Below, piece after piece: positions 12,341 through 59,164 of a stretch of DNA of 64,000 bases. The stretch lies in the IMG/VR virus record IMGVR_UViG_3300037882_003354, positions 124,001 through 188,000 of that record, one strand, 5' to 3'. Numbering within the stretch: position 1 is the first letter of the stretch; every line of letters begins with the position of its first letter. The notes under the pieces were generated by a model. It made no database searches. It saw only the letters and a program-made list of their open reading frames with translations, and was not told where the DNA came from. The translations under genes were made by a program, and so were the position numbers.

Positions 12341-12382
12341 TCTTCAAATGATCTTCAAATGATCTTCAAATGATCTTCAAAA
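12341..12382. repeat. 11-bp tandem repeat TCTTCAAATGA x3.8
   Basis: copies at 12341, 12352, 12363 and partial at 12374. Confidence 0.95.
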
Positions 12383-12459
12383 TAAACCATCAAACCTTCA
12401 AAATACCACAGGGGTGTTAGAGTGAATACCTGTTTCTAGACTTCTTAAAAACACAGAAT

Positions 12460-13427: not shown

Positions 13428-13468
13428 AGACCCGCGCCGGACTCACCGCCATTCTTTTCATCCGGACA

Positions 13469-13474
13469 TAAATA
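13469..13474 (+). promoter_or_regulatory. late-type promoter TAAATA
   Basis: cATAAATA 6 nt before ATG 13481; resembles T4 late TATAAATA. Confidence 0.6.
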
Positions 13475-13480
13475 TTCACT

Positions 13481-42914: not shown

Positions 42915-43540
42915 CAGGGCGCAGACATGATCAGGGATTTGAGTTGTAAAAATAACTCGTCAATGGTGCCATCGTTGGACACCGCATGATCGATGGCACC
43001 GCCCACCCAGGAGGTCTCGCTGGCATGAATGCCCAATTGTGACAATTGCCGACTGCAATCAAGATCACCGGAATTGGCTGCAACCGCCAGGTCAAACCAT
43101 GCAGGATCAGGACCCCTCTTGGTGCGAATCACCACACCCCCTGCATTATGAATTGCCTTGATTTCGTTGGGGAAACGAACATCACTGATGACAATACTGT
43201 CGTTGGTCTTGCGCATCTTGTTTTCCAGGCTGGCGATCCAGATGTCGTCGTGAAATCCTTGACGGCAAACTTCAGTGCCCCAATGTTGTAAAATCCAGCG
43301 TGGAGTTAAGTTGGGCAGGTTCAATCGCGCAGACCACCAAGGGTCCACCTGCTCTCGCCAGGCACGTGACTCTGATGTTCGCCCCTCTAATAGAGTTCGA
43401 TCCCAACCAAATATCACGCTAACCGCGTCTTTGAGAGTGTTGGCAAAACTATCACGACGAAAGCCGTGTACATTGCAGAGGTAATCTGCTGCTGTGTCTT
43501 TTCCACTGCCGATAAAACCAACTAGACCTACAATCATCAT
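42914..43540 (-). CDS. deoxynucleoside monophosphate kinase (gp1-like)
   Basis: GFIGSGKDT, SFA..LKD, PRWILQ.WGTE..R, ISDVRFPNE, HASE. Confidence 0.9.
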   Translation of the reverse strand: MMIVGLVGFIGSGKDTAADYLCNVHGFRRDSFANTLKDAVSVIFGWDRTLLEGRTSESRAWREQVDPWWSARLNLPNLTPRWILQHWGTEVCRQGFHDDIWIASLENKMRKTNDSIVISDVRFPNEIKAIHNAGGVVIRTKRGPDPAWFDLAVAANSGDLDCSRQLSQLGIHASETSWVGGAIDHAVSNDGTIDELFLQLKSLIMSAP

Positions 43541-45626: not shown

Positions 45627-47015
45627 ATGAGTGACTTTTTCTATGACGCGCAGGTAAAACGTTACCTGACTCAATTCATGAGAATCATGAGCAGCTTCTC
45701 CTATAAAGATGCCAAGGGCCAATTGGTACGCATACCAGTCAGATACGGAGACATGAACCGGCAAGTGGCCAGCATACTGAAAAAGAACAGTGAGAACACC
45801 ATTCCCAGTGCGCCATTCATTGCATGCTATATCAAAGAACTAAAGTTTGATCGTTCACGATTGCAAGATCCCACTTTCGTCAGCAAAGTGAACATCAGGG
45901 AACGGGCATTCGACGCCGCTGGTAATGAATATTTGAATTTACAGGGTGCAAATTACACAGTGGAGCGCATCATGCCAACTCCATACTTGATTACCTTTGC
46001 GGCAGATGTCTGGACCACCAACACTGATCAGAAGTTGCAAATATTTGAGCAATTGGCGGTGTTATTCACACCCAGTTTTGAACTACAGACCACTGACAAT
46101 TACATTGACTGGACCAGCCTGAGTGTACTTGAGCTGAGTGATCAAGGTTCGTTCAGCAGCAGGCAGATACCACAGGGTGCAGAACAGGATATAGACATCA
46201 TGAACATGATCTTTACATCTCCCATCTGGATCACACCGCCGGCCAAGGTCAAACAACTGGGCATCATTACAAAAATTATTTCCAACATTTTCGCAGTGCC
46301 CAGTGGCACAGTGGCGTCCTTGGAAGGTGGCTACGGAGATGCAATCTTTGGGGATACCCCTGAAACAGTGGTGGTGACCCCAGGCAACTTTGACCTCTTG
46401 GTTCTGGATAATGTGGCCAAATTAGTGGGCCCAGCAGTGCCCGACGGAATTGTCAATATTGGTGATGTGGAAAATAATACATCCTGGCTAAGGGTGCTGG
46501 ATCTTTATCCCGGCAGGTTCAGAGCAGGACTGAGTCAGTTGCGTCTGGCCAAGGAGGGCGGCACTGAGATTGTGGCCTACATCAGCCTGGATCCCATGGA
46601 TGAATCCAAGATGATGTTGAATTTTGACAACGACACCCGACCAAGCGACACAGAAATCGCCGGCAGGAGCACCATCGATGCCATCATCAATCCAGAAACA
46701 TTCAACCCCACTGGGGTGGTGACCGGCACACGATACTTGGTACTGGAGAACATCAATGAGTTTTACAACCAACCCGGATATGATGGCCCAGTTGCCTGGA
46801 AGAATGCCAATGCCAGTGATTTTGTGGCTAATGCCAACGACATCATAGAATGGAATGGCACCGCATGGACTGTTGTGTTCAATTCACTGGCAACCACCAG
46901 CATTGTTTATATAACCAATTCATATACAAACGTACAATACAAATGGGATCAGGGATCATGGTCCAAGAGCTTTGAGGGTATATACTCCAAAGAACTTTGG
47001 CGACTGATACTTTGA
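45627..47015 (+). CDS. tail terminator / sheath stabiliser (gp15-like)
   Basis: FFYD.Q..RY, IPVRYG, PTPY, QKLQIFEQL..LF.P. Confidence 0.75.
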   Translation: MSDFFYDAQVKRYLTQFMRIMSSFSYKDAKGQLVRIPVRYGDMNRQVASILKKNSENTIPSAPFIACYIKELKFDRSRLQDPTFVSKVNIRERAFDAAGNEYLNLQGANYTVERIMPTPYLITFAADVWTTNTDQKLQIFEQLAVLFTPSFELQTTDNYIDWTSLSVLELSDQGSFSSRQIPQGAEQDIDIMNMIFTSPIWITPPAKVKQLGIITKIISNIFAVPSGTVASLEGGYGDAIFGDTPETVVVTPGNFDLLVLDNVAKLVGPAVPDGIVNIGDVENNTSWLRVLDLYPGRFRAGLSQLRLAKEGGTEIVAYISLDPMDESKMMLNFDNDTRPSDTEIAGRSTIDAIINPETFNPTGVVTGTRYLVLENINEFYNQPGYDGPVAWKNANASDFVANANDIIEWNGTAWTVVFNSLATTSIVYITNSYTNVQYKWDQGSWSKSFEGIYSKELWRLIL

Positions 47016-47437
47016 ATCAAATTGTTTGCAGCGGCGGATTATTCTTAGCCAGAGACACTCGACGTTTTTTGTTCCTGTTGAGAACACAGGGAAAAACAGC
47101 TGGCACCTGGGGCATAGTGGGGGGCAAAAAAGAGCCTGCAGACACCACTGCATATGATATCCTTACTAGAGAGATAGCGGAAGAAGTGGGTCGCACACCC
47201 ACTATTAAGAAGGTGATTCCCTTGGAATTATTCACCAGCAACGATCAACAATTTCAGTACAACACCTATGTACTAATTGTGGAAAAAGAGTTTATTCCCA
47301 CTCTAAATGCAGAGCATGCTGGGTATGCTTGGTGTGATTTTTTGCGCTGGCCCAAGCCCTTGCACCAAGGTGTGAAAACCAGCTTGAGCAGTAAATCCAA
47401 TCAAGTTAAATTGGAAATGCTACTCGAGCTGGTTTGA
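46997..47437 (+). CDS. NUDIX hydrolase
   Basis: W.IVGGKKE.......LTREIAEEVG Nudix box. Confidence 0.85.
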   Translation: MATDTLNQIVCSGGLFLARDTRRFLFLLRTQGKTAGTWGIVGGKKEPADTTAYDILTREIAEEVGRTPTIKKVIPLELFTSNDQQFQYNTYVLIVEKEFIPTLNAEHAGYAWCDFLRWPKPLHQGVKTSLSSKSNQVKLEMLLELV

Positions 47438-47455: not shown

Positions 47456-47758
47456 TTATGGTGTCAGTAGAGCCTTGATGCGATCATAAAGTATCTCGTC
47501 AGTCCAAGTGCCGCGAACTGCCAGGTATTCTGCACCTTCCCAGACTGTCATTCTGCGCTCGACATAGGGAACATCGCTCAACACCACCACAGCCATCACG
47601 CTGTTGGGGCGGCCAGGGGCGCGGCGGCCAGGTCCGTCTGTGTTGTCTTCTTCCCATCCGTAGTTTTCCTCAATGTAGGTCACTCGGAATGAACTAGTGG
47701 TCAAGGCATCGGTGGCTGCTGCAATGGTGTAGGGTTGCGTAAGTGAAATTGTTGTCAT
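47456..47758 (-). CDS. hypothetical late protein
   Basis: AGGAG SD; TAAATA upstream near 47791-47800. Confidence 0.7.
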   Translation of the reverse strand: MTTISLTQPYTIAAATDALTTSSFRVTYIEENYGWEEDNTDGPGRRAPGRPNSVMAVVVLSDVPYVERRMTVWEGAEYLAVRGTWTDEILYDRIKALLTP

Positions 47759-47807: not shown

Positions 47808-48260
47808 TTAAATGCTCATTAAATGCGACATTTTTGGGTTATTTGCAATATAGGCACCAATTATTTTTGCCCAACTCTCAGCATCTTTCTCTTTGACACG
47901 AAAGTCGTAGTTTGTTGGCGGCACAAAAACACGATTGGTATCCTCAAATCTACCTTCCTTGATGGTGTCCATCCAGATGGTCCAGTGAGCGTCAAGGTTT
48001 GTCCTCATCTCAATCAAGGGCGCTACGAAATCGCAAACCACAAAATCTTTTTTTGACGCATCAGCCAATTCCCGCATGCGCAGACTCTGACGTATGCGTC
48101 CTTGGTGGCTGAAATCCCAATCGTTGTATTGTTCACGAACAACATCAGCATTTAACCATAATACATTAGGAACAAGCCCGGCTACGAGCAGCGCGGCCAG
48201 TGTGGTCTTGCCTGAGCCTGGTAGACCCAGTATTAGTATTCGTGTTGGCGTTTTAATCAT
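47808..48260 (-). CDS. adenylylsulfate (APS) kinase-like
   Basis: GLPGSGKTTLA, NAD.VR, DFS..GR..Q..RM, FVAP, F.PP. Confidence 0.75.
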   Translation of the reverse strand: MIKTPTRILILGLPGSGKTTLAALLVAGLVPNVLWLNADVVREQYNDWDFSHQGRIRQSLRMRELADASKKDFVVCDFVAPLIEMRTNLDAHWTIWMDTIKEGRFEDTNRVFVPPTNYDFRVKEKDAESWAKIIGAYIANNPKMSHLMSI

Positions 48261-48283
48261 GATGACAGTTCCATGTGTGGTGG

Positions 48284-49147
48284 TCAAAGCCGACGATTGC
48301 TCAAGACAACTTTGATGGCCTTGGCAAAAGAGAATGAGTTCAACAAATCTTGTAGTTGATATTTTGCAATCACTGGAGAACCAACACCACCCACCAGACA
48401 AAGATTGGCTAGATCGTCTCCCCATTTTTCCGCAAATACATCGAAGTACTTTTGATTGCGTTGATTAATTTGTTGTTGATGTTCAGGACCTGCCCAGGTG
48501 CTCTTGCCGGCAAAGTGCAATATATAACTGTGACTGTAGTATTTTACCGGAAAATTATGGGAGATGGCGCGTATGCGATAGTCCACATCTTCGCCCCCGC
48601 CCACACCAAACCTCTCATCAAACAATCCCACTTGGTTGTACACCGTGGCAGGCAATACAAATGCATAAAAACCCATCAACAGGCGTTCGAAAAATCCCGA
48701 CCGCAGCCGGTCCCGGTGTGCCTGAGCAATCTTGCACAGATCAGCATATTGATTGTTATACTCATCCAGGTTCATGGTCTGCTGCAAGGTCAGTTGACCG
48801 CTGGCGTACAAATGAGTTTGGTTGCAACTGGGCATCACAATGGCATCTGGATGTTGCGTCAGTTCATGGGACCAGCCGGGGGTGAATACGATGTCGTTGT
48901 TGAGCACAATCAGAGTTCTGCCACGCGCAATGCCAATCATGTTGTTGACATTCTTGGCAAAACTCTGGGGTGTTGTATTGGATATCACGCTGGCTTGAGT
49001 GTCGTATGTGCCCTCGTTATCATTGTCAATCAGGTACACCTCATCCCCTGTGCCCAGCCGTGTGCTGCTAAAAAAAGAATCCAGGGCAAGTTTTGTGTAA
49101 AAATTAGAACCCCGGGTGGTGATCATGACGTATACATTGCCCATCAT
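48284..49147 (-). CDS. GT2 family glycosyltransferase
   Basis: LIDN, SFA.NVN, LNNDI, VGLFDERF..GGGEDVDY..R. Confidence 0.85.
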   Translation of the reverse strand: MMGNVYVMITTRGSNFYTKLALDSFFSSTRLGTGDEVYLIDNDNEGTYDTQASVISNTTPQSFAKNVNNMIGIARGRTLIVLNNDIVFTPGWSHELTQHPDAIVMPSCNQTHLYASGQLTLQQTMNLDEYNNQYADLCKIAQAHRDRLRSGFFERLLMGFYAFVLPATVYNQVGLFDERFGVGGGEDVDYRIRAISHNFPVKYYSHSYILHFAGKSTWAGPEHQQQINQRNQKYFDVFAEKWGDDLANLCLVGGVGSPVIAKYQLQDLLNSFSFAKAIKVVLSNRRL

Positions 49148-49944
49148 TTTTTATTCCAAAAATCCAAACTCAACGATCGATAGTATTCGGTCAATTCTGT
49201 TCCAATCACTTGTTCAGCAGGTGGACTGGCTCGTTTTAATTCCGGCCTAATGTCATGCAAGCCCATCAATCCATATGCTCGATCATTTTCTGGTTTGGGA
49301 GTCAGGTGCGCATGATTGAGATTGATAGAATTTGGTATTTCTAAAAAATCAAATATTCTACCCACGGTTGTCACAGAGTTTTCCACAATGTCACCATAGT
49401 CTAAAAACAACATGCTGGTGGGAGCATACTCCCAACCCAATTTTAAACTGGTCCATGGGATGTTGATATACTTTTCCCATAATAGTCTGCATCTATTTTG
49501 ATTGTTCACCGGCTTGTTTGTGTCAATTAACTCTTGATCAATATATGTGATCGTGTGGTTGTTTCTTTCTATTAACAGAATAAAACTGCTGAGAATTTCT
49601 GGAATGTCTCTGACTGTGCAGATGATCTTGGGCGGCTGGCCGTGTAGCTCGGTTAGAAACTTTATATGCCGCGGCCACTCTCTGTGTTTATCTATGATGT
49701 TGGTCTGGGCAACATGCCGGTAACTGGATTCAAATACTCCGTGGACAATGTTGTTCAACTGTCTGGGATCTTGATCCACCAGATGGCCAGTGATACCTGG
49801 CCACCTGTTTTTGATGACATTAATAAGATCCAACACTGGGCTGGTGGTGGTAGTGTAAACATCGGGATGCTGACTCAGCATGCTGGCCAACACCGTGCTA
49901 CCGCTTCTGGGCAGACCCGATATCATGAACACACGTTTATCCAT
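49144..49944 (-). CDS. sulfotransferase
   Basis: 5'-PSB motif SGLPRSGST, DK.R.W, VRD..EILSS. Confidence 0.85.
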   Translation of the reverse strand: MDKRVFMISGLPRSGSTVLASMLSQHPDVYTTTTSPVLDLINVIKNRWPGITGHLVDQDPRQLNNIVHGVFESSYRHVAQTNIIDKHREWPRHIKFLTELHGQPPKIICTVRDIPEILSSFILLIERNNHTITYIDQELIDTNKPVNNQNRCRLLWEKYINIPWTSLKLGWEYAPTSMLFLDYGDIVENSVTTVGRIFDFLEIPNSINLNHAHLTPKPENDRAYGLMGLHDIRPELKRASPPAEQVIGTELTEYYRSLSLDFWNKK

Positions 49945-50857
49945 ATGCCCGTATGGTGTTAAAAAATTGTTGCCATTCCAATTTACGCTGTTCCCAGGAC
50001 CAATAGTGATTGTAATGTGTGGACTGGCGATGTATGTGGTATTGAGTGCTGACCTTCCAATACTCTGCAATGGCCAAATCTAGTTCCCGCGCAAATCTAG
50101 ATGCCAATACCTGGCGATGGTTTAGACCCACCGGAACCATGCGTGCCCAATCGCTGCATGTTTCAGGCAATGCACCATGGCTGGTGGTCACCTGCAGGCA
50201 GCCGGCGGCGGCAGCTTCTATGGCTGCCAGGCAACTGGTTTCTTCAAAAATACTGGGATATGCAAATACATGCGCTTGTTGCAATGCTGCCCTGACCACA
50301 TCGTTGGGTTGATATTCGTGGAAATTTACACCAGGTGTGTTTTTTGTACGTTTAAATATTTCGTCAAACCTGCCCTGGGTTATTTTTACAAAATGATCCC
50401 CGTATATTTTGGCACTGCTGTACACATCGAGTTCAATGTCTGTTCGATCCAGTAACTCAACTGCATCTAACAATATGTCCAGACCACGCCAGGGGGTGCT
50501 GGTGTAGATCAACTTGGTCTTGCCTTCACATCTGGGCATGAACTGTATGGGCTCAATGGCATTTTTTATGACAATACTCTTGTATGCCGGTACATTGAAC
50601 ACTTGACAAAATTTATTGTACTGCCAGTGACTGACAAATACAAAATAATCCACACGTTCTATAAACACTGGATTGGACATCAGTGCCACTTGTTCTTCGT
50701 TGGTGTTCAAGTGTTGCCATACCACATTGATCTTGTTGGGGTCAATTTTTGCATGATCGCACGAACTCAAGATCAGGTTCACTCGGTCCTGCCAGTCGGT
50801 GCCCACATGTTTTAACATGTTGAAATACAGTATCTCACTGCCGCCCATGGGATTCAT
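49937..50857 (-). CDS. GT4 family glycosyltransferase
   Basis: GGSE, VFVS.WQ, I.NAI, YTSTPWRGL, YPS.FEETSC...IEA.AAG. Confidence 0.85.
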   Translation of the reverse strand: MNPMGGSEILYFNMLKHVGTDWQDRVNLILSSCDHAKIDPNKINVVWQHLNTNEEQVALMSNPVFIERVDYFVFVSHWQYNKFCQVFNVPAYKSIVIKNAIEPIQFMPRCEGKTKLIYTSTPWRGLDILLDAVELLDRTDIELDVYSSAKIYGDHFVKITQGRFDEIFKRTKNTPGVNFHEYQPNDVVRAALQQAHVFAYPSIFEETSCLAAIEAAAAGCLQVTTSHGALPETCSDWARMVPVGLNHRQVLASRFARELDLAIAEYWKVSTQYHIHRQSTHYNHYWSWEQRKLEWQQFFNTIRAYG

Positions 50858-51504
50858 AGACTCTCCGCAAATTTCATCAGGGTATCGTATATCTTGACCT
50901 TGGGTTTGAGCATACGATAAATGGGATTTTCCAGACGCTCACGGGCCTTTTGCCCCTTGCCAGTCAACACCAGCACAGGCGTGGCGCCTGCTCGCTCGGC
51001 CATGGTTAGGTCTTCTATGGTGTCGCCAACATAGGCGCCGCCGGCTATTTTGACGCCAGGACTGTTATTTTCCGCATGTTTAAACAGTCCCAGATTGGGC
51101 TTGGCATAAACATCATCCTTGCGTGAACTGGTGTTGTACCAGATGCCATCTATGCTGGTGCATCCTGCCTGCCCCAGCAAATTCAACATGTGCCGGTTGC
51201 AATCTTCCACTTGCTCCACAGTGACCTTTCGGTGACTTACACTGGGCTGATCATATAAGAAAAGCACCCGGTGTCCCTTGCTGCGTATGATGGCAACAGC
51301 ACGAAATGCATCTGCTATGGGAATAAATTTGTCAGGACCAGTTATTGCATCATGACATTCGCACACCACACCGTCCCTGTCCAGAGCAATGGTGAATTTA
51401 TCAAAAGTCGCCGGCATGACCAGGGCAGTAGATGTTGCAATACCGGAGTTCTCGCTCACCGCGGCATTGGGCAACATGTTTTTGTCAACACTAAATCTGC
51501 CCAT
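50854..51504 (-). CDS. D,D-heptose 1,7-bisphosphate phosphatase-like HAD (GmhB-like)
   Basis: LDRDGV, KP..G.F, VGD...D, LVLTGKG. Confidence 0.75.
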   Translation of the reverse strand: MGRFSVDKNMLPNAAVSENSGIATSTALVMPATFDKFTIALDRDGVVCECHDAITGPDKFIPIADAFRAVAIIRSKGHRVLFLYDQPSVSHRKVTVEQVEDCNRHMLNLLGQAGCTSIDGIWYNTSSRKDDVYAKPNLGLFKHAENNSPGVKIAGGAYVGDTIEDLTMAERAGATPVLVLTGKGQKARERLENPIYRMLKPKVKIYDTLMKFAESL

Positions 51505-51507
51505 GAT

Positions 51508-52233
51508 TTACTCGTATAGTGATTTAATATCTTGCGGCGTGGAGACACGTTGTTTTATACCATCCAGCCATCCTGGGAAATCAGCAGTGAACAAATTGTT
51601 GGTGTTTTGTGAACAGGTGGTGGTGGGCCATGCCCAGATGTCTATGCCCAGGTCCTTGAGTTTGTTGCACAGCACCTGACTCTCATTAAAGAATCTGCCG
51701 TATTGTGTCTGATGCTCAAATACCACCTTGACATCATTGTTGTTTTCATCTGTGATGGAGACGTTGCTGTTCATCAAGGCTTGAATCACAGGCCGGTCCA
51801 GCTTCATGCAGGCTGTGCTGGCATAGGAAACTTTAAGGAATCCCTGCTGATCAAACTGCAGATTGGATTTGTCAAAATCAATGTCATATATCACACTGTT
51901 GGTCTTCTTGCTGATCACTGGCAGCACCACCACCGGCAGGTCAGACATCATGATTCGAACCATTTCATTGGCATCCCAGGCCAGATCATGATCAACAAAC
52001 ACCAGGCTGTCCACTTCCTGCTCAAATGCTATCTTGAGCAAATCGTTTTTTGCCATGGGAACAGACCGATCGTTGCCGATGAAAACCGGTATCACTGTGA
52101 TGCCCACGCTCATGGCAGACTTGATGGTGTCTGACAGACTGTGTACATAGAATACATCAAGTTTACTTTCCCGGGCCACAGTGGCCAGGATTACAAGTTT
52201 GGATTTTAGTGCTGTGTTATTTGGTGTCATCAT
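51508..52233 (-). CDS. GT-A fold glycosyltransferase-like, divergent paralog of 52230..53009
   Basis: AKN.L, FVDHD, degenerate ED motif. Confidence 0.6.
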   Translation of the reverse strand: MMTPNNTALKSKLVILATVARESKLDVFYVHSLSDTIKSAMSVGITVIPVFIGNDRSVPMAKNDLLKIAFEQEVDSLVFVDHDLAWDANEMVRIMMSDLPVVVLPVISKKTNSVIYDIDFDKSNLQFDQQGFLKVSYASTACMKLDRPVIQALMNSNVSITDENNNDVKVVFEHQTQYGRFFNESQVLCNKLKDLGIDIWAWPTTTCSQNTNNLFTADFPGWLDGIKQRVSTPQDIKSLYE

Positions 52234-53009
52234 ATGCCTTTGTTGTTGATATATCTATTGAGGTAGTTGTTGCCGTAACTGGTGCGGGCGGCTGGTGGTG
52301 TTTGTGTTGTAGCAGGTGTGGCGGTGGGTCTGGTCTTGGCCAGCCAGGCATCAAAGTTTCCAGTGTACTTTTTAAATCCAATATGGTTGCAGGTGATGCT
52401 GGTGTCCAACCAGGTTTTAAATCCCAGTTGTTTGAGTTTTCTGCACAGGTGGATGTCTTCGCTGATCAAGCCGCCATTTTCCACAACCACCTCGAACACC
52501 CAGCGTCGGTCTTTGTTTTGGTCCAATTCCACATACACTGGACTGGCATCCCATATGGCATCCACTGCACGACGACTGAACCTGAGAAAACCAGTGCCTA
52601 GCCCATCAACCTCCAATAAATTGGTCACAGGGTCCTTGGCAGCGTATGGATCATCCATCTTGGCCACATATAGTTCAGTCTCACCCTTCTTGGGGTAAGT
52701 GCCGCCCACAATGTCCACGGGATAATTTAACAGTCGGTAGAACCATTCAGGTTCCCACTCAATGTCATTGTCGATGAATATGATGTCGTCGCAATCCAGT
52801 TCCCTGACCAGAGCAATAGTGTCGTTTCTGGCTCTTTGTACCAGGGCATCATAACTGACCCAGATGGGGATGATTTCCACATTCATCTCTGCGGCTAGTT
52901 TGACGGTGTTGACCAGACTGTTCACATACCATACATCAATGCTGCCATCATAGCAGGGTGTTCCCACCATGACTCGTCTTTTCTTTTTTATTTCCATCAT
53001 GCCATCCAT
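52230..53009 (-). CDS. GT-A fold glycosyltransferase
   Basis: TPCYDG, VQRARN, FIDND, GG.YPKK, GTGFL, SED..LC, CNHIG. Confidence 0.75.
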   Translation of the reverse strand: MDGMMEIKKKRRVMVGTPCYDGSIDVWYVNSLVNTVKLAAEMNVEIIPIWVSYDALVQRARNDTIALVRELDCDDIIFIDNDIEWEPEWFYRLLNYPVDIVGGTYPKKGETELYVAKMDDPYAAKDPVTNLLEVDGLGTGFLRFSRRAVDAIWDASPVYVELDQNKDRRWVFEVVVENGGLISEDIHLCRKLKQLGFKTWLDTSITCNHIGFKKYTGNFDAWLAKTRPTATPATTQTPPAARTSYGNNYLNRYINNKGI

Positions 53010-53821
53010 AACATTTGTCGCTTGATATGGTCAAAATCATATTTCCAAAAACTGCTGGTCACATATGTTTGCCATAGGTCTGCAGGAATAATGGGCTTCC
53101 TGGCCTTATATTCTACACGACGACGAACAGTATGTAAACCAGAAATATTGGCCTGCTGATCAAATTCGTCGTAACTGTCTTCCACATTTTCAAAGTCGTG
53201 TTCAAACCAGGGTTCATTGATAAACTTATAAATTTGTTGCATGGTTTCCCTGGGACGTTTGGTCAACACATCATAATCCACCACACACAACATGTCTTTT
53301 TCGTTGCCATACATGGCTTGCTTGGTACAAGCAATGGGGCCGCTGACGTAACCACCGCCACCATCCTGGCTCATCAGCATGTTCACTCGATTGAACACCG
53401 TGGGCAGGTCCTGATGCTGAAACAATGCCTTGATGGTGTAGGGATTCCTGGCGTTCAACTGCTCGAAACTGTCCAGAATCCAGGGCACATCCCTAATGCA
53501 CACTATGATCTTGCTGGCGGGAAACAAGTCGCGCACCATGGGCGTTTGTGCACACCAGGCTCGATTGGTGTTAAAGCAAACCTCAGGTCCACCTTGGTAA
53601 AATGTGGAAAATAATCCGCGTATCAATGCTGCCCGTTTTTCCACAGGAACTGCCGACTCCATGCCCACTGCGGTGTGCGTCACTTGCAGTATGTTCCTGG
53701 AATAATCCTGCAATGGGTCAGAAATACTTGCATGAAACCTGGGGTTTTGTTTCAATATGGCACTGAGCAAGGTGGACCCACTGCGTGGAAGTCCGGATAT
53801 GAAGTGATATTTTTGCATCAT
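52997..53821 (-). CDS. sulfotransferase
   Basis: FISGLPRSGSTLL..IL.QNP, IRD..WILDS, GLH.VR. Confidence 0.85.
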   Translation of the reverse strand: MMQKYHFISGLPRSGSTLLSAILKQNPRFHASISDPLQDYSRNILQVTHTAVGMESAVPVEKRAALIRGLFSTFYQGGPEVCFNTNRAWCAQTPMVRDLFPASKIIVCIRDVPWILDSFEQLNARNPYTIKALFQHQDLPTVFNRVNMLMSQDGGGGYVSGPIACTKQAMYGNEKDMLCVVDYDVLTKRPRETMQQIYKFINEPWFEHDFENVEDSYDEFDQQANISGLHTVRRRVEYKARKPIIPADLWQTYVTSSFWKYDFDHIKRQMLWMA

Positions 53822-55521
53822 TCTTTCACCAACAATTTACCCAGATCAGGCAGGTACAGATACTTTATATCCGACTTGAGCAGAGTGTTGATGGCGTCAA
53901 CCAGGGTTTCCACCAAGGGTTCCCCTGCCAGGTTGAAACTAGTGTTGAACACCATGGGAACCGATGTCCGGGTATAAAATGCCTGGATCACAGCATGGTA
54001 ATGAGAGTTGTCCTGTGCGTTGACCGTCTGCACTCGACAGGTGCCATCCACATGAGTCACTGCCGGAATCTCACCCAGTTTGTCAGTGGCCACATCAATG
54101 GCGTACATCATGAATGGGCTGGATTTTAGACCTCGCATGTCAAACCAGGTGGCAGCCTGTTCTTCCAGTATGCTGGCAGCAAATGGTCTAAACCATTCCC
54201 GACCTTTAACACGGTTCACACGGTCCTTGCCATCTTGAACACGCGGATCAAACAACATGGATCGGTTGCCCAGTGCCCGGGGGCCGCCTTCTGCACGACC
54301 ACTAAACATGGCCACGATGTTTTGGGTGGCCAATAATTCTGCAACGTCGTCAGCCAGGGCATGTTGCATTTTAAGTTGCGGCACTTGTGCCAGCAACTGA
54401 TCCAACATCTGATAGTTGGGTTGTGCGCCCAGGTACACATGCTTGAGTGGTCTGACCACTGAGTCCTCACTGTGCAAATGCCAGGCCAGTCGTGCCAGCC
54501 CCAGTGCAGTTCCGCCGTCGTGGCTGATGGGATCCACATAGAGATTGATGTCTTTACATCTGTCCAGGAGGTAATAGTTGGCCACACAGTTGAGTGCATA
54601 CCCACCAGCCAAGACAACATTTTTAATGCCAGTGGCAGCCACTGCTCGTTCGATCAGGATGCCCAGGAGTTCCTGTGTTTCCTGTTGCACATGGAAGGCC
54701 AGGTCGCGGTCCATGTCGGTGACTTTACTGAAGTCCCAGTGCCATTCCTTGGGGTCTTGTTTGCGTCGTAGATCAGGGAATCTATCCTCATCAATAAATG
54801 CACCAGCAGGATACATGGGCAACAGCAGGTTTTTATTGCCGCGGCCTTCTACGAAAAATGCAGGGATGGCTGCGTTGCGTTTGCCATAAGGCGCCAGCCC
54901 CATGGTTTTGCCGGCTTCGATAAATCCAAAACCCAGATACTGACTGACTGCTTCGTATGCCTTGGTGATGGTGACGGAATTGTCAAATTCCTGCAGGCCA
55001 TTGTTGAAGTAGGGAGTGCGTCCGTCAGAATATCTCTTGTACAAGGGCTCAAATGCAGCTGGGTAACTGCACTTGTAGACACTTTCTGTCTCGTATCCGC
55101 CCACCGGTGTACCAGTACCGTCTGGACCTGTGGTGGTGGACACCATGCTGCCGGCACCGTCCACCACAATGGCCAGGGCTTCAGTAAATCCGCTGTTGTA
55201 GAACGCACCAGCGGCATGGCCCAGGTGATGTTGGTGTCCTAGATTGGTGACCTTGACACCAGGATTGAATTTACGCACCAGGGCCGAGTAACTGTCCTCA
55301 CCGGTCCAGGGCAAGATGGCCAGTTCTGGATTGGTGCCACCAATCACCAGTTCGTCAATACGGTGACTCTGCAGGCATTCCAGCATGGCACGGAAGGGAT
55401 TGCCGTCATATTTCATGCGACTCAGTCGTTCTTCTTCTGAATAATAAACCACTTCACCGTCCACCACCAGGCATGCGCTGCCATTGTGGCCGGGATTTAT
55501 AGCAAGTATTGAATACGTCAT
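53818..55521 (-). CDS. O-carbamoyltransferase (NodU/CmcH/TobZ family)
   Basis: GHN.S, EEERLSR.K, HHLGHA, VDGAG, GKTMGLAPYG, GG.ALN, EGGPRALGNRS, RE.FRPFA, NTSFN. Confidence 0.92.
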   Translation of the reverse strand: MTYSILAINPGHNGSACLVVDGEVVYYSEEERLSRMKYDGNPFRAMLECLQSHRIDELVIGGTNPELAILPWTGEDSYSALVRKFNPGVKVTNLGHQHHLGHAAGAFYNSGFTEALAIVVDGAGSMVSTTTGPDGTGTPVGGYETESVYKCSYPAAFEPLYKRYSDGRTPYFNNGLQEFDNSVTITKAYEAVSQYLGFGFIEAGKTMGLAPYGKRNAAIPAFFVEGRGNKNLLLPMYPAGAFIDEDRFPDLRRKQDPKEWHWDFSKVTDMDRDLAFHVQQETQELLGILIERAVAATGIKNVVLAGGYALNCVANYYLLDRCKDINLYVDPISHDGGTALGLARLAWHLHSEDSVVRPLKHVYLGAQPNYQMLDQLLAQVPQLKMQHALADDVAELLATQNIVAMFSGRAEGGPRALGNRSMLFDPRVQDGKDRVNRVKGREWFRPFAASILEEQAATWFDMRGLKSSPFMMYAIDVATDKLGEIPAVTHVDGTCRVQTVNAQDNSHYHAVIQAFYTRTSVPMVFNTSFNLAGEPLVETLVDAINTLLKSDIKYLYLPDLGKLLVKE

Positions 55522-56459
55522 TATTTCACCTGTTTTTCTATGTCTGCGACAATCCGGTTGTAGATGTCCACAATCTCAGCCTCGTCAAAATCCATCATGC
55601 GATCATTATGGCGGTCTGCCAGTGTGCTGTCCAGACCAGTGATGCGTATGGGGCTGTATTTCTTCTCACCGGCTTTTTCTATGATCTGGAAAAAGTCAGG
55701 ATAACTGGTGTTCACAGGAAAGGTGGATCCAAAAATCACAGTGCCTGGCGTGTCAGTGGCCCGGGCCATGTGCTGTCCCACGGAATCCACACCCACAAAA
55801 TAATCAGCACAATCAATCAGGGCTGCCCACATGCGCAGGTCAGTGTTGGGTTGTAACTTGGCTGTGTATGTGTCTGTGACAATCTGGAATTGTTGTTCGC
55901 CAAAGAACACCATGTTGTATTTGGCTGCCAGTTTTTTCACCAGACTGATGTAAGCATCTGCTGACAGACTGCGACTGGCCGGATCCACCACGTCTGACCG
56001 ATCCAGAGTGGCACCGCGACCGAACGGCTGTATGACTATGGTCTTGTTCTTCTGCTGTGCCTGCTTGACGTCGGCAATGGTGTTGGCGGCCCATTTTTCT
56101 TCAGCCTTGTTGAATATCAACTTGGGTATGGTTAGATCACTGTGATCAGTGGTCATGTTGATCTCGCGATCAAAACCTTCCACCAGGCTGATTTCCTGTC
56201 GGAAATAGGCAGGCAGTCGGTAGGGCTCGGGTGTTAGAATACGATCTGCCTGTGACACCACGTTGTCCCAGAGCCCCTTGGTGTCGGCTCCGTAGGTCCG
56301 GTCCTGTAGTTCGGGTATGCTCCACAACAGGTAATCCCAGGCTGGAATGATGATGTTCCAGTCGGCACCAGGGTTCAGTCGGTGAAATTTCAGCAGGGCG
56401 GGAATGGCTGCAATCACTCGGCCAGCCCCGCCGTCTATGTAAATTATGGTCTTTGACAC
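55521..56459 (-). CDS. GT9-like (ADP-heptose heptosyltransferase-type) glycosyltransferase
   Basis: GG.G..IAAIPAL, IVIQPFG, ALI..ADYFVGVDS..QHMA.A...P..VIFG. Confidence 0.7.
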   Translation of the reverse strand: MSKTIIYIDGGAGRVIAAIPALLKFHRLNPGADWNIIIPAWDYLLWSIPELQDRTYGADTKGLWDNVVSQADRILTPEPYRLPAYFRQEISLVEGFDREINMTTDHSDLTIPKLIFNKAEEKWAANTIADVKQAQQKNKTIVIQPFGRGATLDRSDVVDPASRSLSADAYISLVKKLAAKYNMVFFGEQQFQIVTDTYTAKLQPNTDLRMWAALIDCADYFVGVDSVGQHMARATDTPGTVIFGSTFPVNTSYPDFFQIIEKAGEKKYSPIRITGLDSTLADRHNDRMMDFDEAEIVDIYNRIVADIEKQVK

Positions 56460-56474: not shown

Positions 56475-56513
56475 GTATATACTTAATGTATATACTTAAT
56501 TATCCTGTGTCAA
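56475..56513 (-). promoter_or_regulatory. promoter region of the modification operon with a 13-bp tandem repeat
   Basis: TTGACA-17-TACATT; ATTAAGTATATAC x2, each containing late-like TAAGTA. Confidence 0.55.
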
Positions 56514-56527: not shown

Positions 56528-59119
56528 TTATTTGGTGGTCATCAATGTTTCAAGTTGTTGTTCAAGATTGTGTATTTTGATGTCTAGATCCTGAATGGCC
56601 TTGACCATGATGGGCATGAGTTTGCCAGGATCAGCATATAACTGTTCTGGATTAGCATCATGCGCCAGTCGTATGTGGTCTTGAACTCCATATTTCTTGA
56701 TCAATTCCAACAGGTCTTGAGCCAGGAATCCTGAATCTGGTATACCCGTTCTGTTGCCATCGCGAGTGGCCCAGGTGAATTGTACTGGTTTGACTTCCTT
56801 GATGAAATCCAGACCCACTGGTATGCCACTGATGCCAGTTTTATCTCGACAATCTGACAGGGATGTCCAGGTGGCACTGGGTGCATATTGGCTGGTGTAT
56901 GCGGTGGTTCCCAGCACTATACTATTGCATGATGTGGTGGTTGGCGCTGCTGCCAGATGGCCTATGATGATGTTGCTGCACCCCACAGTCAATGTGACGC
57001 CTGCACCTGCACCCAGTGCAATATTACCGCCCGATCCGTTTGAATTATACAACGCACAGCAACCAATGGCTATGTTGTTACATCCAGTGCGGTTGTTGGA
57101 CAGTGCGCAAATACCAATGGCCACGTTGTTGTTGCCAGTGGTGTTGCCATACATGGCACGTTCGCCCACCATGAAGTTATTGCAGGTAAGGATCGGCGAC
57201 GCCGTGCCGCCAACGGCGCGGCCAATGCCCACGTTGTTACATCCTCGAACGCATCGCATGGCGAACCGTCCAATGCCCACATTGGCATCACCATAAACGT
57301 ACGCGAGTGCACTCCAGCCAATGGCCACGTTGTCACTTCCTGTTGCCTGGAGCATGGCATATGGACCAATGGCCACATTACAACATCCATTAATCAGGTT
57401 TCCCATGGTAGACTGGCCGATGCCTACATTTAAAGCCGCAGCCACCGCACTTGATAGAGCACTATCACCTATGGCCACGTTACCATAACCACCCACCTGA
57501 CTGCATAATGCATTGGATCCAATGGCTATACCTCCACCGCCGTAAGTACTGGCCGCTAATGCACCTGCTCCCAGTGCCACATTGTTGCTGCCATTTATCA
57601 ATCCGGCCAGTGACTTGCACCCAATGCCTATGTTGCCAGTGCCGTAATTATAGCCATATTCTGCATCGCCTGTTCTTCTTAAATTATATAATGAACATAT
57701 GCCTGCAGAAAAATTGCTGTTGTTTCCATAATCATTACAGTATTGTGATTTGTATCCCTGAGCAAAATTCTCACTGCTTGATATGTTATTATACATGGCC
57801 TGTTTACCCAGGGCCATGTTATTATTGCCAAAAGCGTTGTTGTATAACGAACAGTAACCCACTGCCAAATTATTAGAACCCGAACAGGCACTGTATAATG
57901 AATATGTTCCAATGGCTATATTGCAATTGCCAAACACGCTCTTGCACAAGGAATAGGCTCCCATGGCTATGTTATCGCAACCCAAATTGTTTCGTAATGC
58001 AAATGTGCCAAATGCAGTATTATTACATCCAGTAGAATTACCTCTGCCTGCAAGACATCCCATACTAGTGTTGTTGCATCCGGTAATGTCAGTATTGCCA
58101 GCAAGACATCCTATGTGGGTGTTGCCATTACCAGTGGTATAACCAAACACTGATCCCAATGACGTGGGTGTGGCTGGTGTACTGGCGCCTCCGCCTGCAC
58201 TGCCAGTATAGCCCACGCTTCCATTATATCCTGATCCAATTGAACCAGTGTATCCCACACCGCCAGTGAGCAGGGTGTTGTTGACATACAAGCCAGTGGC
58301 ATCAACTTTTATTCGTTCAGTGGTACCAGCACCTATCAACACGGTGTCTGACAGTCCTGCAGTGGCCGGCAACTGACCAATGATGGTGTTGTTGGCACCT
58401 GTGGTTAGAAGGCATCCTGCGCATGTACCAATGCCAATGTTATTGCTTGCATCTGAACATTTGAGTGACAGGTAACCAATGGCGATTGAACACTGGGGAG
58501 TCTGTCCATAAAAGAGAGAATTCACACCAAGGGCCACGTTGTTGTTTCCGCCATGATTGGAGTACAAGGCTCCGTACCCCATGGCCATGTTACAACTTCC
58601 GGTGTCGTTACAGTAGAGAGCGATAGCGCCAATGGCCGTGTTGACTGCGCCGCTGGTGTTAGCGCGTAGTGCATACGATCCCACCGCAGTATTTGCACTT
58701 CCCGATGAATTACCGATTAACGCACCGTAGCCCACGGCTGTGTTTTCTGTTCCCTGTTGGTTGCTATTCAGTGACAGTGAACCCACGGCTGTGTTGAAGG
58801 CGCCAATGGTGTTTTGTTCCAGTGACAGGTAGCCAATGGCAGTATTTTGGCGGCCGGTGGTATTGCCGTAGAGTGACTCGTAGCCAAGGGCCACATTACT
58901 ATAGCCACAGGTGTTATATGCAAGTGCGCGATTTCCAATGGCAACGTTACTATAACCATTGATATTACGTTGCAATGCACAGACACCTATGGCCACATTG
59001 TTCTGGGCGCTGACCGTCACGCTGGACAAGGCACATTGCCCCACGGCCACGTTGCCATTGAGTACGCTAGCACCCGTGATATCGGGGATAACGGTGTTAC
59101 CAGAGAGTTTTATTGCCAT
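56528..59119 (-). CDS. tail fibre / adhesin with 14-aa NxAxG repeats and C-terminal S74 intramolecular chaperone
   Basis: (AL..N..G..N.A.G)n, GYTGS repeats, SDCRDK...G+.AQ++ chaperone motif and coiled coil. Confidence 0.85.
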   Translation of the reverse strand: MAIKLSGNTVIPDITGASVLNGNVAVGQCALSSVTVSAQNNVAIGVCALQRNINGYSNVAIGNRALAYNTCGYSNVALGYESLYGNTTGRQNTAIGYLSLEQNTIGAFNTAVGSLSLNSNQQGTENTAVGYGALIGNSSGSANTAVGSYALRANTSGAVNTAIGAIALYCNDTGSCNMAMGYGALYSNHGGNNNVALGVNSLFYGQTPQCSIAIGYLSLKCSDASNNIGIGTCAGCLLTTGANNTIIGQLPATAGLSDTVLIGAGTTERIKVDATGLYVNNTLLTGGVGYTGSIGSGYNGSVGYTGSAGGGASTPATPTSLGSVFGYTTGNGNTHIGCLAGNTDITGCNNTSMGCLAGRGNSTGCNNTAFGTFALRNNLGCDNIAMGAYSLCKSVFGNCNIAIGTYSLYSACSGSNNLAVGYCSLYNNAFGNNNMALGKQAMYNNISSSENFAQGYKSQYCNDYGNNSNFSAGICSLYNLRRTGDAEYGYNYGTGNIGIGCKSLAGLINGSNNVALGAGALAASTYGGGGIAIGSNALCSQVGGYGNVAIGDSALSSAVAAALNVGIGQSTMGNLINGCCNVAIGPYAMLQATGSDNVAIGWSALAYVYGDANVGIGRFAMRCVRGCNNVGIGRAVGGTASPILTCNNFMVGERAMYGNTTGNNNVAIGICALSNNRTGCNNIAIGCCALYNSNGSGGNIALGAGAGVTLTVGCSNIIIGHLAAAPTTTSCNSIVLGTTAYTSQYAPSATWTSLSDCRDKTGISGIPVGLDFIKEVKPVQFTWATRDGNRTGIPDSGFLAQDLLELIKKYGVQDHIRLAHDANPEQLYADPGKLMPIMVKAIQDLDIKIHNLEQQLETLMTTK

Positions 59120-59164
59120 CTTTGCTCCATTTATACTTAATTAAAGTTCCGTCATGCTGCTCAT

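Follow-up and report, generated by a model that had tools for sequence, protein, structure and literature searches.

A putative heptose, carbamoyl and sulfate glycan operon lies beside the tail-fibre genes of a freshwater jumbo phage

Directly behind its tail-fibre genes, a 322-kb freshwater jumbo phage carries ten coupled enzyme genes that should build a heptose-containing, carbamoylated and sulfated sugar decoration. The core pair of these genes, a GT9-like transferase and a carbamoyltransferase, sits in tail-fibre modules of many other phages, including cultured marine cyanophages, which makes the unexplained "LPS genes" of cyanophages directly testable. The predicted chemistry (carbamoyl-heptose plus sulfate) is well supported, while the acceptor is inferred, with a tail-fibre-module protein as our tentative best guess. 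We analyzed a 64,000-nucleotide stretch of IMG/VR record IMGVR_UViG_3300037882_003354 (positions 124,001 to 188,000; hereafter the window), together with the rest of the genome, starting from a first-pass annotation based on sequence alone. Its observation of a ten-gene operon downstream of the fibres is confirmed: all ten open reading frames are present on the minus strand, and every family label holds. Its interpretation, a complete pathway glycosylating the fibres by analogy with TibC/AAH, is only partly supported. Positions below refer to the window; the two fibre genes and the last three gene features lie outside the operon.

56459 to 55521, minus strand: g1, GT9-family, GT-B fold, probable ADP-heptose-dependent glycosyltransferase (312 aa, GTG start)
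55521 to 53818, minus strand: g2, TobZ/NodU/CmcH-type O-carbamoyltransferase (567 aa)
53821 to 52997, minus strand: g3, PAPS-type sulfotransferase 1 (274 aa)
53009 to 52230, minus strand: g4, viral GT-A glycosyltransferase (phrog_1574); the true start may be ATG 53000
52233 to 51508, minus strand: g5, paralogue of g4, GT-A glycosyltransferase (241 aa)
51504 to 50854, minus strand: g6, HAD-IIIA phosphatase, GmhB-like (216 aa)
50857 to 49937, minus strand: g7, GT4/GT1-type (GT-B) glycosyltransferase (306 aa)
49944 to 49144, minus strand: g8, PAPS-type sulfotransferase 2 (266 aa)
49147 to 48284, minus strand: g9, GT2-like GT-A glycosyltransferase (287 aa)
48260 to 47808, minus strand: g10, short viral APS-kinase-like P-loop kinase (150 aa)
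56513 to 56485, minus strand: putative sigma-70-like promoter element in the 68-bp fibB-g1 spacer
59119 to 56528, minus strand: fibB, tail fibre (863 aa), candidate acceptor
64000 to 59165, minus strand: fibA, tail fibre (2323 aa in the genome; the N-terminal part lies beyond the window end), candidate acceptor
20384 to 19608, minus strand: HldD-like ADP-glycero-manno-heptose 6-epimerase (258 aa)
20797 to 20381, minus strand: HldE domain II-like heptose-1-phosphate adenylyltransferase (138 aa)
21150 to 20794, minus strand: small cupin (118 aa) co-inherited with the heptose genes, candidate sugar-phosphate isomerase or epimerase

Neighboring genes of the operon overlap by 1-13 nt or are 3-23 nt apart, which is typical operon coupling. 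Two starts were corrected: g8 begins at ATG 49944 rather than at the longest-ORF start 50070, and g10 begins at ATG 48260. The cluster is not a chance arrangement, as it is conserved in about 50 related IMG/VR contigs, although g9 is present in only part of these relatives and g10 in only 2 of about 50.

The g1 protein matches PF01075 (GT9) at 34 bits against a cut-off of 22 and phrog_8954 at E 5e-75. Its AF2 model (pLDDT 92) has only GT9 enzymes as top PDB folds (3tov, WaaF, WaaC, TibC), and the 20 best Swiss-Prot folds are all heptosyltransferases. The motif D225-S226...H230-A232-A234 is invariant. The g2 protein matches Carbam_trans_C at 201 bits and Carbam_trans_N at 72 bits; its PDB relatives are TobZ, GdmN, and the novobiocin carbamoyltransferase (E 1e-45 to 1e-56), and homologues with 41-52% identity occur in cyanophages.

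Both sulfotransferases match Sulfotransfer_3 (PF13469), g3 at 55 bits and g8 at 58 bits, and g8 also matches PF00685 at 53 bits; they share 25% identity. Both carry the motif PRSGST, which in g3 is the 5'-PSB motif accompanied by an invariant R110...S118. The g3 model (AF2, pLDDT 90.6) is nearest in fold to TPST1/2, followed by NoeE, NodH, and HS-3-OST, while TPST1 is the nearest solved sequence to g8 (E 5e-5). The g10 protein matches PF01583 (APS_kinase) at 28 bits against 21, aligns to APS kinase 2yvu over the P-loop, LDGD (here LNAD), and FVSP (here FVAP) regions, and is placed by the Atlas in exclusively viral PF01583-positive clusters.

The g4 and g5 proteins have no Pfam hit. They are paralogues (29% identity, E 5e-30) that carry FIDND/FVDHD DxD motifs (DND at residues 80-82 of g4, DHD at residues 81-83 of g5) and fall in a viral GT-A (Anp1/GT2-like) cluster of the Atlas; g4 matches phrog_1574 at E 1e-24, g5 only weakly. 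The g7 protein has a GT1/GT4 C-terminal domain (PF13692 at 46 bits, PF00534 at 40 bits; phrog_2170 glycosyltransferase at E 2e-34). The g9 assignment is weak (PF13641 at 29.4 bits against 27), although DND and EDVD motifs are present. The g6 protein matches TIGR01662 at 58.6 bits against 44.6 and PRK08942 (GmhB) at 78.8 bits, below its cut-off; its homologues sit inside heptose-pathway operons next to g1/g2 in other phages, for example at the locus L073.

The heptose assignment is much stronger than could be seen from the operon alone. Elsewhere, the genome encodes HldE-domain-I-like (kinase; 138 bits), HldE-domain-II-like (TIGR02199, 100 bits), and HldD-like (TIGR02197, 251 bits against a cut-off of 274.6) proteins plus the cupin, which has weak PF01050/PF07883 hits. 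With g6, this is a near-complete ADP-heptose pathway. The HldD-like protein is 42-49% identical to the P-SSM2 and S-SSM7 epimerases, the adenylyltransferase-like protein is 37-41% identical to its cyanophage orthologues, and the cupin is an orthologue of the cyanophage "cysteine dioxygenase" T4-GC 307, with a 67% identical copy inside the L073 heptose operon. Orthologues of these genes flank the g1/g2 orthologues in P-SSM2, S-SSM7, and AG-345-O18, in L073 and L085, and in 27 of 80 IMG/VR loci. However, the operon is not the complete pathway claimed by the first-pass annotation: the HldE-like and HldD-like genes lie outside it, no GmhA and no ATP sulfurylase were found, the kinase and GmhB-like genes are accessory in relatives, and the heptose genes and g10 are missing from complete relatives.

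The g1 and g2 genes form a conserved pair. They are adjacent in 64 of 72 IMG/VR loci with room downstream, in 16 of 18 other loci, and in the cyanomyoviruses P-SSM2 and S-SSM7. No g1 homologue turned up in 185,579 species genomes except on phage-like MAG contigs.

The operon starts 68 bp downstream of fibB, with no terminator-like site between them. Both fibB and fibA carry NxAIG-type repeats (81 NxAIG-like repeats in fibA) and a C-terminal Peptidase_S74 intramolecular chaperone domain, and their composition is N 11-13%, T 8-12%, S 7-8%, and G 15%. In about 50 relatives, the operon always follows the fibre genes, and in P-SSM2 and S-SSM7 the pair follows tail-fibre genes, including a fibB homologue (PSSM2_298 in P-SSM2, 9 kb upstream of the g1 orthologue). 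In Vibrio phage K479 and Aeromonas phage HJ05, the g1 homologue sits between large structural or tail genes. ORFs with tail-fibre-assembly PHROG hits lie directly before g1. A fibre-like gene lies upstream in 56 of 58 IMG/VR loci, a count without a matched random control apart from the asymmetry of unusual Cys-rich ORFs, which number 55 upstream against 2 downstream. The physical link to tail-fibre modules recurs across unrelated phage lineages. On the other hand, the fibB-type fibre is common in phages that lack g1, and in other lineages the conserved neighbor is a Cys-rich protein that is absent here, so the acceptor may differ between lineages.

The fibB-g1 spacer contains TTGACA-17-TACATT with two copies of TTAAGTATAWA. 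By pattern match alone, this is a sigma-70-like promoter, conserved as TTGAC/T-17-TATAxT upstream of g1 in at least seven relatives. It differs from the late-type TAAATA-type motif before tube, sheath, and fibre genes, and fits early or middle expression at least as well as late.

Taken together, we interpret the region as a phage-encoded cytoplasmic module for glycan building and tailoring. In this view, its ancient core is the two-gene unit: g1 would use ADP-heptose to put a heptose on an acceptor, and g2 would O-carbamoylate it with carbamoyl phosphate and ATP, as Pseudomonas does to core HepII with WapO. In this freshwater jumbo-phage family, the unit would be extended by four more glycosyltransferases (g4, g5, g7, g9) that add further sugars and two PAPS-dependent sulfotransferases (g3, g8) that add sulfate, and in this particular genome also by supply genes: g6, g10, and the HldE-like, HldD-like, and cupin genes elsewhere. 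The most likely acceptor, though held at somewhat less than even confidence, is a protein of the tail-fibre module, here fibA and fibB, which would be modified in the cytoplasm before or during fibre assembly, giving the receptor-binding fibres an anionic glycan coat. The gene content, folds, conservation, and synteny are shown by our analyses, whereas the donor sugars, the order of steps, and above all the acceptor are inferred, and sequence alone cannot decide between fibre, host glycan, and DNA.

Two alternatives raised by the first-pass annotation, host LPS and DNA, remain possible. Host-envelope remodeling is the less unlikely of these: the enzymes may act at the cytoplasmic face on a glycoconjugate that the host then exports (LPS core, a capsule or O-antigen precursor, or a glycolipid), and the added carbamoyl-heptose, sulfate, and further sugars would mask receptors, blocking superinfection or stopping progeny from sticking to debris. 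The closest folds of g1 are LPS heptosyltransferases (OpsX, WaaF, WaaC), the only characterized carbamoyl-heptose is in the LPS core (PMC8005017), the conserved promoter element is sigma-70-like, peripheral LPS-core glycosyltransferases are also soluble proteins, and the cyanophage orthologues have long been annotated as LPS genes. However, cyanobacterial LPS lacks heptose and Kdo (PMC4515613), yet cyanophages keep the pair together with a full heptose pathway, which argues against the canonical LPS inner core as the acceptor of the family, as do the finding of the g1 family only on phage DNA and, for host glycans more broadly, the position inside tail-fibre modules. Also against envelope remodeling, there is no initiating transferase, flippase, polymerase, or ligase anywhere in the genome. 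An exported polysaccharide is disfavored because all ten proteins are soluble and the genome has no polytopic membrane protein that could act as flippase or polymerase. The phage also looks strictly lytic in the window, where no integrase was seen, albeit without a dedicated search. DNA hypermodification to evade restriction appears very unlikely. Multi-glycosyltransferase clusters that glycosylate DNA do exist, and sets of GmhB-like phosphatase, kinase, and nucleotidyltransferase also serve DNA arabinosylation pathways (PMC13326640; Pyle et al. 2024, as cited); T4 beta-glucosyltransferase is also a GT-B enzyme, and the promoter element fits early expression. Nevertheless, the only thymidylate-synthase-family gene scores 345 bits on PF00303, as a canonical ThyA would, no TET/JBP was found in a search without a positive control, the sugar genes match heptose-specific models rather than arabinose or hexose pathways, and the module sits among fibre genes rather than nucleotide-metabolism genes. 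Sulfated or carbamoyl-heptosylated DNA is not known.

Two further readings are also unlikely. In one, g1 and g2 glycosylate a protein, but g3 and g8 are protein-tyrosine sulfotransferases of the TPST/RaxST type that sulfate tyrosines of fibre or other proteins directly. The nearest solved sequences and folds of both are TPST1/2 (E 5e-5 by sequence; E 1e-9 with TM about 0.55 by fold), with carbohydrate sulfotransferases later at E 1e-5, and sulfotransferases and g1/g2 occur independently in other lineages. Yet the similarity is modest (17-22% identity), the sugar-sulfating NoeE and NodH follow closely, and PF13469 is a broad family with few solved bacterial members. In the other, the target is a soluble or lipid-linked small molecule (a Nod-factor-like or antibiotic-like glycoside), or the Cys-rich fibre-module proteins in other lineages and an unknown protein here. 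NodU, NodH, NoeE, and TobZ relatives all tailor small glycosides, and Cys-rich proteins, not classical fibres, are the most constant neighbor outside this family; however, the operon has no scaffold-forming enzyme (no NodC-type chitin synthase, PKS, or NRPS), and synteny points to structural proteins.

The closest known systems are the cyanomyovirus LPS gene clusters (P-SSM2, S-SSM7, S-SM2; T4-GCs 302-308; Sullivan et al. 2010, PMC3037559), whose function has never been established and for which the 2010 paper even considered "stuffer DNA." They share orthologous GT9-like (34-35% identity), carbamoyltransferase (43-44%), HldE-adenylyltransferase-like (37-41%), carbohydrate kinase (40-47%), cupin (32-34%), and epimerase (42-49%) genes, with the adjacent pair downstream of tail-fibre genes. 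The cyanophage clusters lack the sulfotransferases and the g4, g5, g7, and g9 glycosyltransferases, carry GmhA and 2OG oxygenases, and have Cys-rich proteins between the fibre and the GT9-like gene, whereas here the heptose genes are scattered over the genome.

In the Pseudomonas LPS inner core, the same two enzyme families, heptosyltransferases WaaC/WaaF and carbamoyltransferase WapO (PA5005), work together on a heptose to give 7-O-carbamoyl-HepII (PMC8005017). There, the acceptor is Kdo2-lipid A in a cellular LPS pathway, while the phage family is embedded in tail modules and is also kept by phages whose hosts have no heptose or Kdo in their LPS; identity to cellular enzymes is only 10-17% in fold alignments. 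The autotransporter heptosyltransferases (TibC, AAH, BAHTCr), the analogy drawn in the first-pass annotation, share the GT9-type GT-B fold and an ADP-heptose donor and modify repeat-rich, beta-helical surface adhesins in the cytoplasm. The analogy fails on the defining features of that subfamily: g1 has 312 aa against about 400 and a single Cys, so no 4-Cys iron finger, and although TibC is among its top PDB folds, LPS heptosyltransferases are slightly closer. The g1 protein is not a member of that subfamily.

In mycobacteriophage virion glycosylation (Freeman et al. 2023, cited in PMC12619734) and the chlorovirus and mimivirus glycan machineries, virus-encoded cytoplasmic glycosyltransferases encoded beside structural genes decorate virion proteins. 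The mycobacteriophage systems reportedly modify capsid and tail-tube C-termini, whereas here the unproven target would be tail fibres. As far as is known, mycobacteriophage systems use hexose-type sugars, and no heptose, carbamoyl, or sulfate is known on them. Rhizobial Nod-factor tailoring combines the same three tailoring enzyme families on one glycan (NodU for carbamoyl, NodH and NoeE for sulfate), but here there is no NodC/NodB/NodA scaffold, scores lie far below the equivalog cut-offs (NodU 124 against 1000; NoeE 15-21 against 500), and the biology is unrelated.

The operon lies in a 322,512-bp IMG/VR virus record with direct terminal repeats, rated 100% complete by CheckV; the window is bases 124001-188000 of this record. 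The record is a jumbo myovirus: within the window are genes for a 1002-aa tail sheath, tube, large terminase, DnaB-like helicase, and primase. Based on its sheath, the phage is a distant relative (33-48% identity) of PA5oct and of the Rak2/CBB/Atu_ph07 group. Near-identical DNA occurs in lake and freshwater metagenomes from more than ten studies. There are no tRNA genes in the window, and a profile search of the genome for psbA (PF00124) was negative. A megablast search of the operon against cultured phages found no match; only protein-level searches were informative.

The observation made in the first-pass annotation held: ten minus-strand ORFs fill this stretch, they overlap by 1-13 nt or are separated by 3-23 nt, and every family label it gave is confirmed. 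Two starts needed correction, with g8 starting at 49944 and g10 at 48260. Directly upstream are fibB (863 aa) and fibA (2323 aa, running past the window end), which both have dozens of NxAIG-type repeats, are rich in Asn, Thr, Ser, and Gly, contain 4% Cys, and end in a Peptidase_S74 chaperone domain; they are bona fide fibres. The main features of the locus and its surroundings are as follows.

47808-56459, minus strand: the ten-gene operon, with g1 (GT9-like), g2 (carbamoyltransferase), g3 and g8 (Sulfotransfer_3, 25% identical to each other), g4 and g5 (paralogues without a Pfam hit, with DxD motifs and a viral GT-A cluster identity), g6 (HAD-IIIA, GmhB-like), g7 (GT4-like), g9 (weak GT2), and g10 (APS-kinase-like)
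47456-47758, minus strand: d1, a conserved 100-aa acidic ORF directly downstream of the operon, preceded by an ATAAATAAATA motif, without a family hit and present in many relatives (39-80% identity)
46997-47437, plus strand: a NUDIX hydrolase gene next to d1 and facing the opposite way, its 3' end 19 nt from that of d1, so that it converges on the operon end; conserved at this position in almost all relatives (65-92% identity)
56485-56513: in the fibB-g1 spacer, which holds a sigma-70-like promoter element and two copies of the 11-mer TTAAGTATAWA
59128-59140: the third copy of the 11-mer, 11 nt before fibB
19608-20384, minus strand: HldD-like epimerase
20381-20797, minus strand: HldE-domain-II-like adenylyltransferase
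20794-21150, minus strand: small cupin
19028-19618, minus strand: adjacent 196-aa ORF without a family hit
genome 259669-260406 (L062:4001-4738 in our locus numbering), minus strand: HldE-domain-I-like kinase, outside the window and about 80 kb downstream of the operon
genome 190152-192143 (L063:2152-4143), minus strand: a 663-aa protein between fibA and a 2190-aa fibre, with two stretches matching the ubiquitin-activating-enzyme E1 FCCH domain (PF16190, E 2e-11), an odd domain for a fibre module
41838-42176, plus strand: a small Cys-rich HNH-endonuclease-like ORF (weak PF01844 hit), inserted between the sheath gene and a dNMP-kinase-like gene (42914-43540)

The GC content of window positions 1-14000 is 53-60%, against 43-49% in 18000-58000, and our naive ORF caller produced many Cys-rich, probably antisense, ORFs in this GC-rich stretch.

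To assess the predicted function of g1, we combined profile, sequence, and fold searches. The protein matches the CAZy GT9 family profile PF01075 at 34.2 bits against a cut-off of 22, but only residues 198-251 align, and the NCBIfam LPS heptosyltransferase I/III and RfaQ equivalogs score far below their cut-offs. A phmmer search against PDB sequences gave nothing meaningful, so we turned to a predicted structure (pLDDT 92), built from an alignment without GenBank cyanophage rows. This model has a GT-B two-Rossmann fold, and its top 30 PDB hits are 3tov, WaaF, WaaC, and TibC (E about 1e-10, TM 0.5-0.69), while the top 20 Swiss-Prot folds are all heptosyltransferases. GT9 enzymes share an N-terminal G-rich loop and a C-terminal D-S/T-G-x-x-H-x-A donor-binding motif. 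The corresponding residues G10, G11, G13, and R14 and D225, S226, H230, A232, and A234 are invariant across 20 homologues down to 27% identity. However, g1 lacks the defining features of the autotransporter heptosyltransferases TibC and AAH, which are enzymes of about 400 aa with a four-cysteine iron finger and extra oligomerisation elements (PDB 4RAP/4RB4). It has 312 aa and a single Cys, and these enzymes rank 14th-20th in the fold search, behind the marginally closer LPS heptosyltransferases.

The first-pass annotation had inferred heptose from a weak GT9 hit and a GmhB-like gene, and two independent lines now support it: the fold and donor-site motif of g1, and the heptose-pathway genes scattered elsewhere in the genome. 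The kinase scores 138 bits on TIGR02198, the adenylyltransferase 100 bits on TIGR02199, the epimerase 251 bits on TIGR02197 (cut-off 274.6), and the GmhB-like g6 79 bits on PRK08942; all lie below the equivalog cut-offs. With g6, these genes would cover four of the five steps to ADP-L,D-heptose. A search of the genome for GmhA (PF13580) was negative, and the co-inherited cupin might replace it, although this is inference. The complete relatives G002, G003, and G005 lack the kinase and the HldD orthologue.

In g2, the Kae1-like N-terminal domain (PF02543, 72 bits against 24) and the YrdC-like C-terminal domain (PF16861, 201 bits against 27) both exceed their Pfam thresholds, and TobZ, GdmN, and the novobiocin enzyme in the PDB match at E 1e-45 to 1e-56. 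At 123.7 bits against a cut-off of 1000 for the NodU equivalog (NF041651), g2 belongs to the NodU/CmcH/TobZ family but is not a NodU orthologue. The sulfotransferases g3 and g8 score 55 and 58.5 bits against 27, both carry the 5'-PSB motif PRSGST, R13, R110, and S118 (the last two of the 3'-PB motif) are invariant, and the fold matches sulfotransferases only. The g3 model (pLDDT 90.6) is closest to protein-tyrosine sulfotransferases (TPSTs, E 1e-9), followed by the Nod-factor sulfotransferases NoeE and NodH (E 1e-7 to 1e-6) and the heparan-sulfate 3-O-sulfotransferases (HS-3-OST, E 1e-5), so sulfate may go on either sugar or tyrosine. For g10, PF01583 scores 28.1 bits against 21.1, but the equivalog TIGR00455 only 19.9 against 138.7. 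APS kinases have a P-loop, LDGD and FISP motifs, and a domain of about 180-200 aa; g10 has only 150 aa and keeps the P-loop, with LDGD replaced by LNAD and FVSP by FVAP. It belongs to a purely viral clade of short APS_kinase-positive proteins and is absent from nearly all relatives, and is thus at most a supply booster. No ATP sulfurylase or CysD-like gene of note was found, in a search that did not include the ATP sulfurylase family PF01747; a PAPS_reduct search gave only a marginal 23-bit hit far away (genome 309578-309820). A second cytidylyltransferase-like gene (37 bits) also lies elsewhere, at genome 287994-288362.

The g1 and g2 genes form a conserved pair. In the cyanomyoviruses P-SSM2 and S-SSM7, a g1 orthologue (34-35% identity) lies immediately upstream of the "Nol-like carbamoyltransferase" (43-44% identical to g2). 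This pair sits downstream of tail-fibre genes and is followed by orthologues of the adenylyltransferase, kinase, cupin, and epimerase, plus GmhA. The pair is also present in S-CAM1, S-CAM3, Sf-FS3, P-SSM5, and SAG-derived marine viruses. In a wider IMG/VR scan, at least 530 stretches encode g1 relatives. Among the best 80 loci, a carbamoyltransferase gene starts within 2.5 kb (usually 0-30 nt) downstream of g1 in 64 of the 72 loci with room downstream, while 27 loci carry heptose-pathway genes and 26 carry the sulfotransferases. No g1 homologue was recovered from an isolate's cellular genome, in a scan that works through short peptide patterns and is therefore not exhaustive. The genome-collection hits all lie on 13 contigs (L073-L085) binned into MAGs with inconsistent labels: Polynucleobacter, Woesearchaeota, Verrucomicrobiales, Neomarinimicrobiota (one contig of 335 kb), Methanobacteriota, and others. 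Because their gene content is phage-like, they are probably mis-binned phage DNA, and we rejected them as host evidence.

The pair is recurrently embedded in tail-fibre modules. In about 50 contigs of the window's own jumbo family, the cluster always lies between the fibre genes and the divergent NUDIX / sheath-stabiliser / structural-protein block. The core g1-g2-g3 is always in that order; g4, g7, and g8 are usually present, g9 and g6 are variable, and g10 occurs in only two relatives. Outside the family, g1 follows tail-fibre genes in P-SSM2, including a fibB homologue (PSSM2_298), and in S-SSM7, and it sits between very large structural or tail genes in Vibrio phage K479 and Aeromonas phage HJ05. 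In the MAG contigs L075 and L077, g1 is preceded by ORFs with tail-fibre-assembly PHROG hits. Of 58 IMG/VR loci with at least 4 kb upstream, 56 have a fibre-like gene upstream on the same strand.

The most specific neighbour is a class of Cys-rich (8-13% Cys), Gly-rich proteins of 250-1460 aa and unknown function (phrog_4205, phrog_35878), for which Pfam scans returned nothing. In phages outside the window's family they sit almost invariably just upstream of the pair, with 55 such ORFs upstream of g1 against 2 downstream and a median distance of about 550 nt. Examples are P-SSM2 PSSM2_304/306 (L056:8964-10034 and 10763-11830), L073:4094-7864, L077:3786-6842, L121:2343-5486, and many of the loci L104-L152. 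They may be the acceptor or a fibre-tip component. The window's genome has no such protein, and here the fibres themselves occupy that position.

The association is with the fibre module, not with one fibre fold, since the fibB type also occurs in many phages without g1. Co-variation of the operon with fibre type, which had been suggested as a check, would be uninformative, as the fibres are hypervariable (34-59% identity) while the enzymes are conserved (55-84%), so that any correlation would only mirror phylogeny. In a related lake population, g1-g3 are about 97% identical and collinear, whereas over window 57000-58900 fibB matches only in short, rearranged repeat pieces, i.e., the fibres diversify rapidly next to a stable enzyme operon.

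The regulatory sequences call for caution on the acceptor. A sigma-70-like TTGACA-17-TACATT element precedes g1 and is conserved in at least seven relatives, while tube, sheath, and fibre genes carry a TAAATA-type motif instead. No terminator-like site separates fibB from g1, so read-through is also possible. The 11-mer TTAAGTATAWA occurs only three times in 322 kb, once before fibB and twice before g1, against about 0.3 occurrences expected by chance, which hints at a shared control element. A metatranscriptome check yielded three short contigs on g2 and fibB in one lake RNA library, too little to show transcription or timing.

Altogether, the interpretation in the first-pass annotation is partly supported. 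The arrangement is real and non-random, and the proposed chemistry is well supported, with high confidence for carbamoyl-heptose and somewhat lower, though still good, confidence for PAPS-dependent sulfation. The operon is not, however, the complete pathway that had been proposed. While the gene content, its conservation, and its position beside the fibres are shown by our analysis, the use of ADP-heptose by g1 is inferred only indirectly, from co-inheritance with HldE-, HldD-, and GmhB-like genes, and transfer to Ser/Thr of the fibres, the class of sulfate acceptor, and a glycan on virion proteins are likewise inferences. The acceptor is not established. A fibre-module protein is the best single hypothesis, held tentatively, based on the recurrent embedding in tail-fibre modules of several phage lineages, the phage-only distribution in these searches, and the lack of any export machinery. 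All ten proteins lack transmembrane segments, and the whole genome has no polytopic membrane protein that could flip or polymerise a lipid-linked glycan, which favors a cytoplasmic, non-exported acceptor.

Remodelling of host glycans is the next candidate, held with lower confidence, and other acceptors and DNA follow. Against the canonical LPS inner core as the family's general acceptor, cyanobacterial LPS lacks heptose and Kdo, yet cyanophages retain the pair with a complete heptose pathway; on the other hand, LPS heptosyltransferases are the marginally closer folds of g1. Against DNA, the only thymidylate-synthase-family gene scores as a canonical ThyA, and the sugar genes match heptose-specific models, although GmhB-like, kinase, and nucleotidyltransferase sets are also used for DNA arabinosylation. 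A genome search for TET/JBP (PF12851) was negative but had no positive control, so it says little.

It remains possible, although somewhat less likely than not, that tail fibres or fibre-associated proteins of abundant aquatic myoviruses, in both the freshwater jumbo family and marine T4-like cyanophages, are glycosylated in the host cytoplasm by a phage-specific heptosyltransferase/carbamoyltransferase pair, and that in the jumbo family the glycan is elaborated into a sulfated oligosaccharide. If so, this would be the first glycosylated, and the first sulfated, receptor-binding organelle of a phage of Gram-negative hosts, and heptosylation, carbamoylation, and sulfation would join the short list of phage virion modifications. 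Host recognition and adsorption in very abundant lake and ocean phages would then depend on a phage-made, anionic sugar coat that genome-based host-range models ignore, as might resistance to proteases or grazers and stickiness to particles. It would also give a function to the cyanophage "LPS genes," unexplained since 2005-2010, and explain why cyanophages, whose hosts' LPS lacks heptose, carry a whole ADP-heptose pathway. Even if the target proves to be the host envelope, the conserved pair would be a compact module for making carbamoyl-heptose, found only on phage DNA in these searches.

Literature searches for phage sulfotransferases, carbamoyltransferases, or heptosyltransferases together with tail fibres found no prior description of this module or of the pair's link to fibres. 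The "moraphage" jumbo lineage is described with core glycosyltransferases (PMC12619734), but nothing ties that lineage to this one. The analogy with AIDA/TibC is functional at best. The pairing of a heptosyltransferase with a NodU-family carbamoyltransferase has one characterised counterpart, the 7-O-carbamoyl-HepII of the Pseudomonas LPS core, made by WapO. With the mycobacteriophage-type virion-glycosylation systems, the locus shares the genomic arrangement, glycosyltransferases embedded in a structural module. The module thus belongs with virus-encoded glycosylation machinery and with the cyanophage "LPS genes," whose function Sullivan et al. left open in 2010. Of the latter set, all six co-occurring genes (T4-GCs 302, 303, 304, 305, 307, and 308) have orthologues in this one genome at 32-49% identity, with GmhA (T4-GC 306) absent, and because cultured cyanophages such as P-SSM2, S-SSM7, S-CAM1, and S-CAM3 carry the orthologous core, the system is unusually testable.
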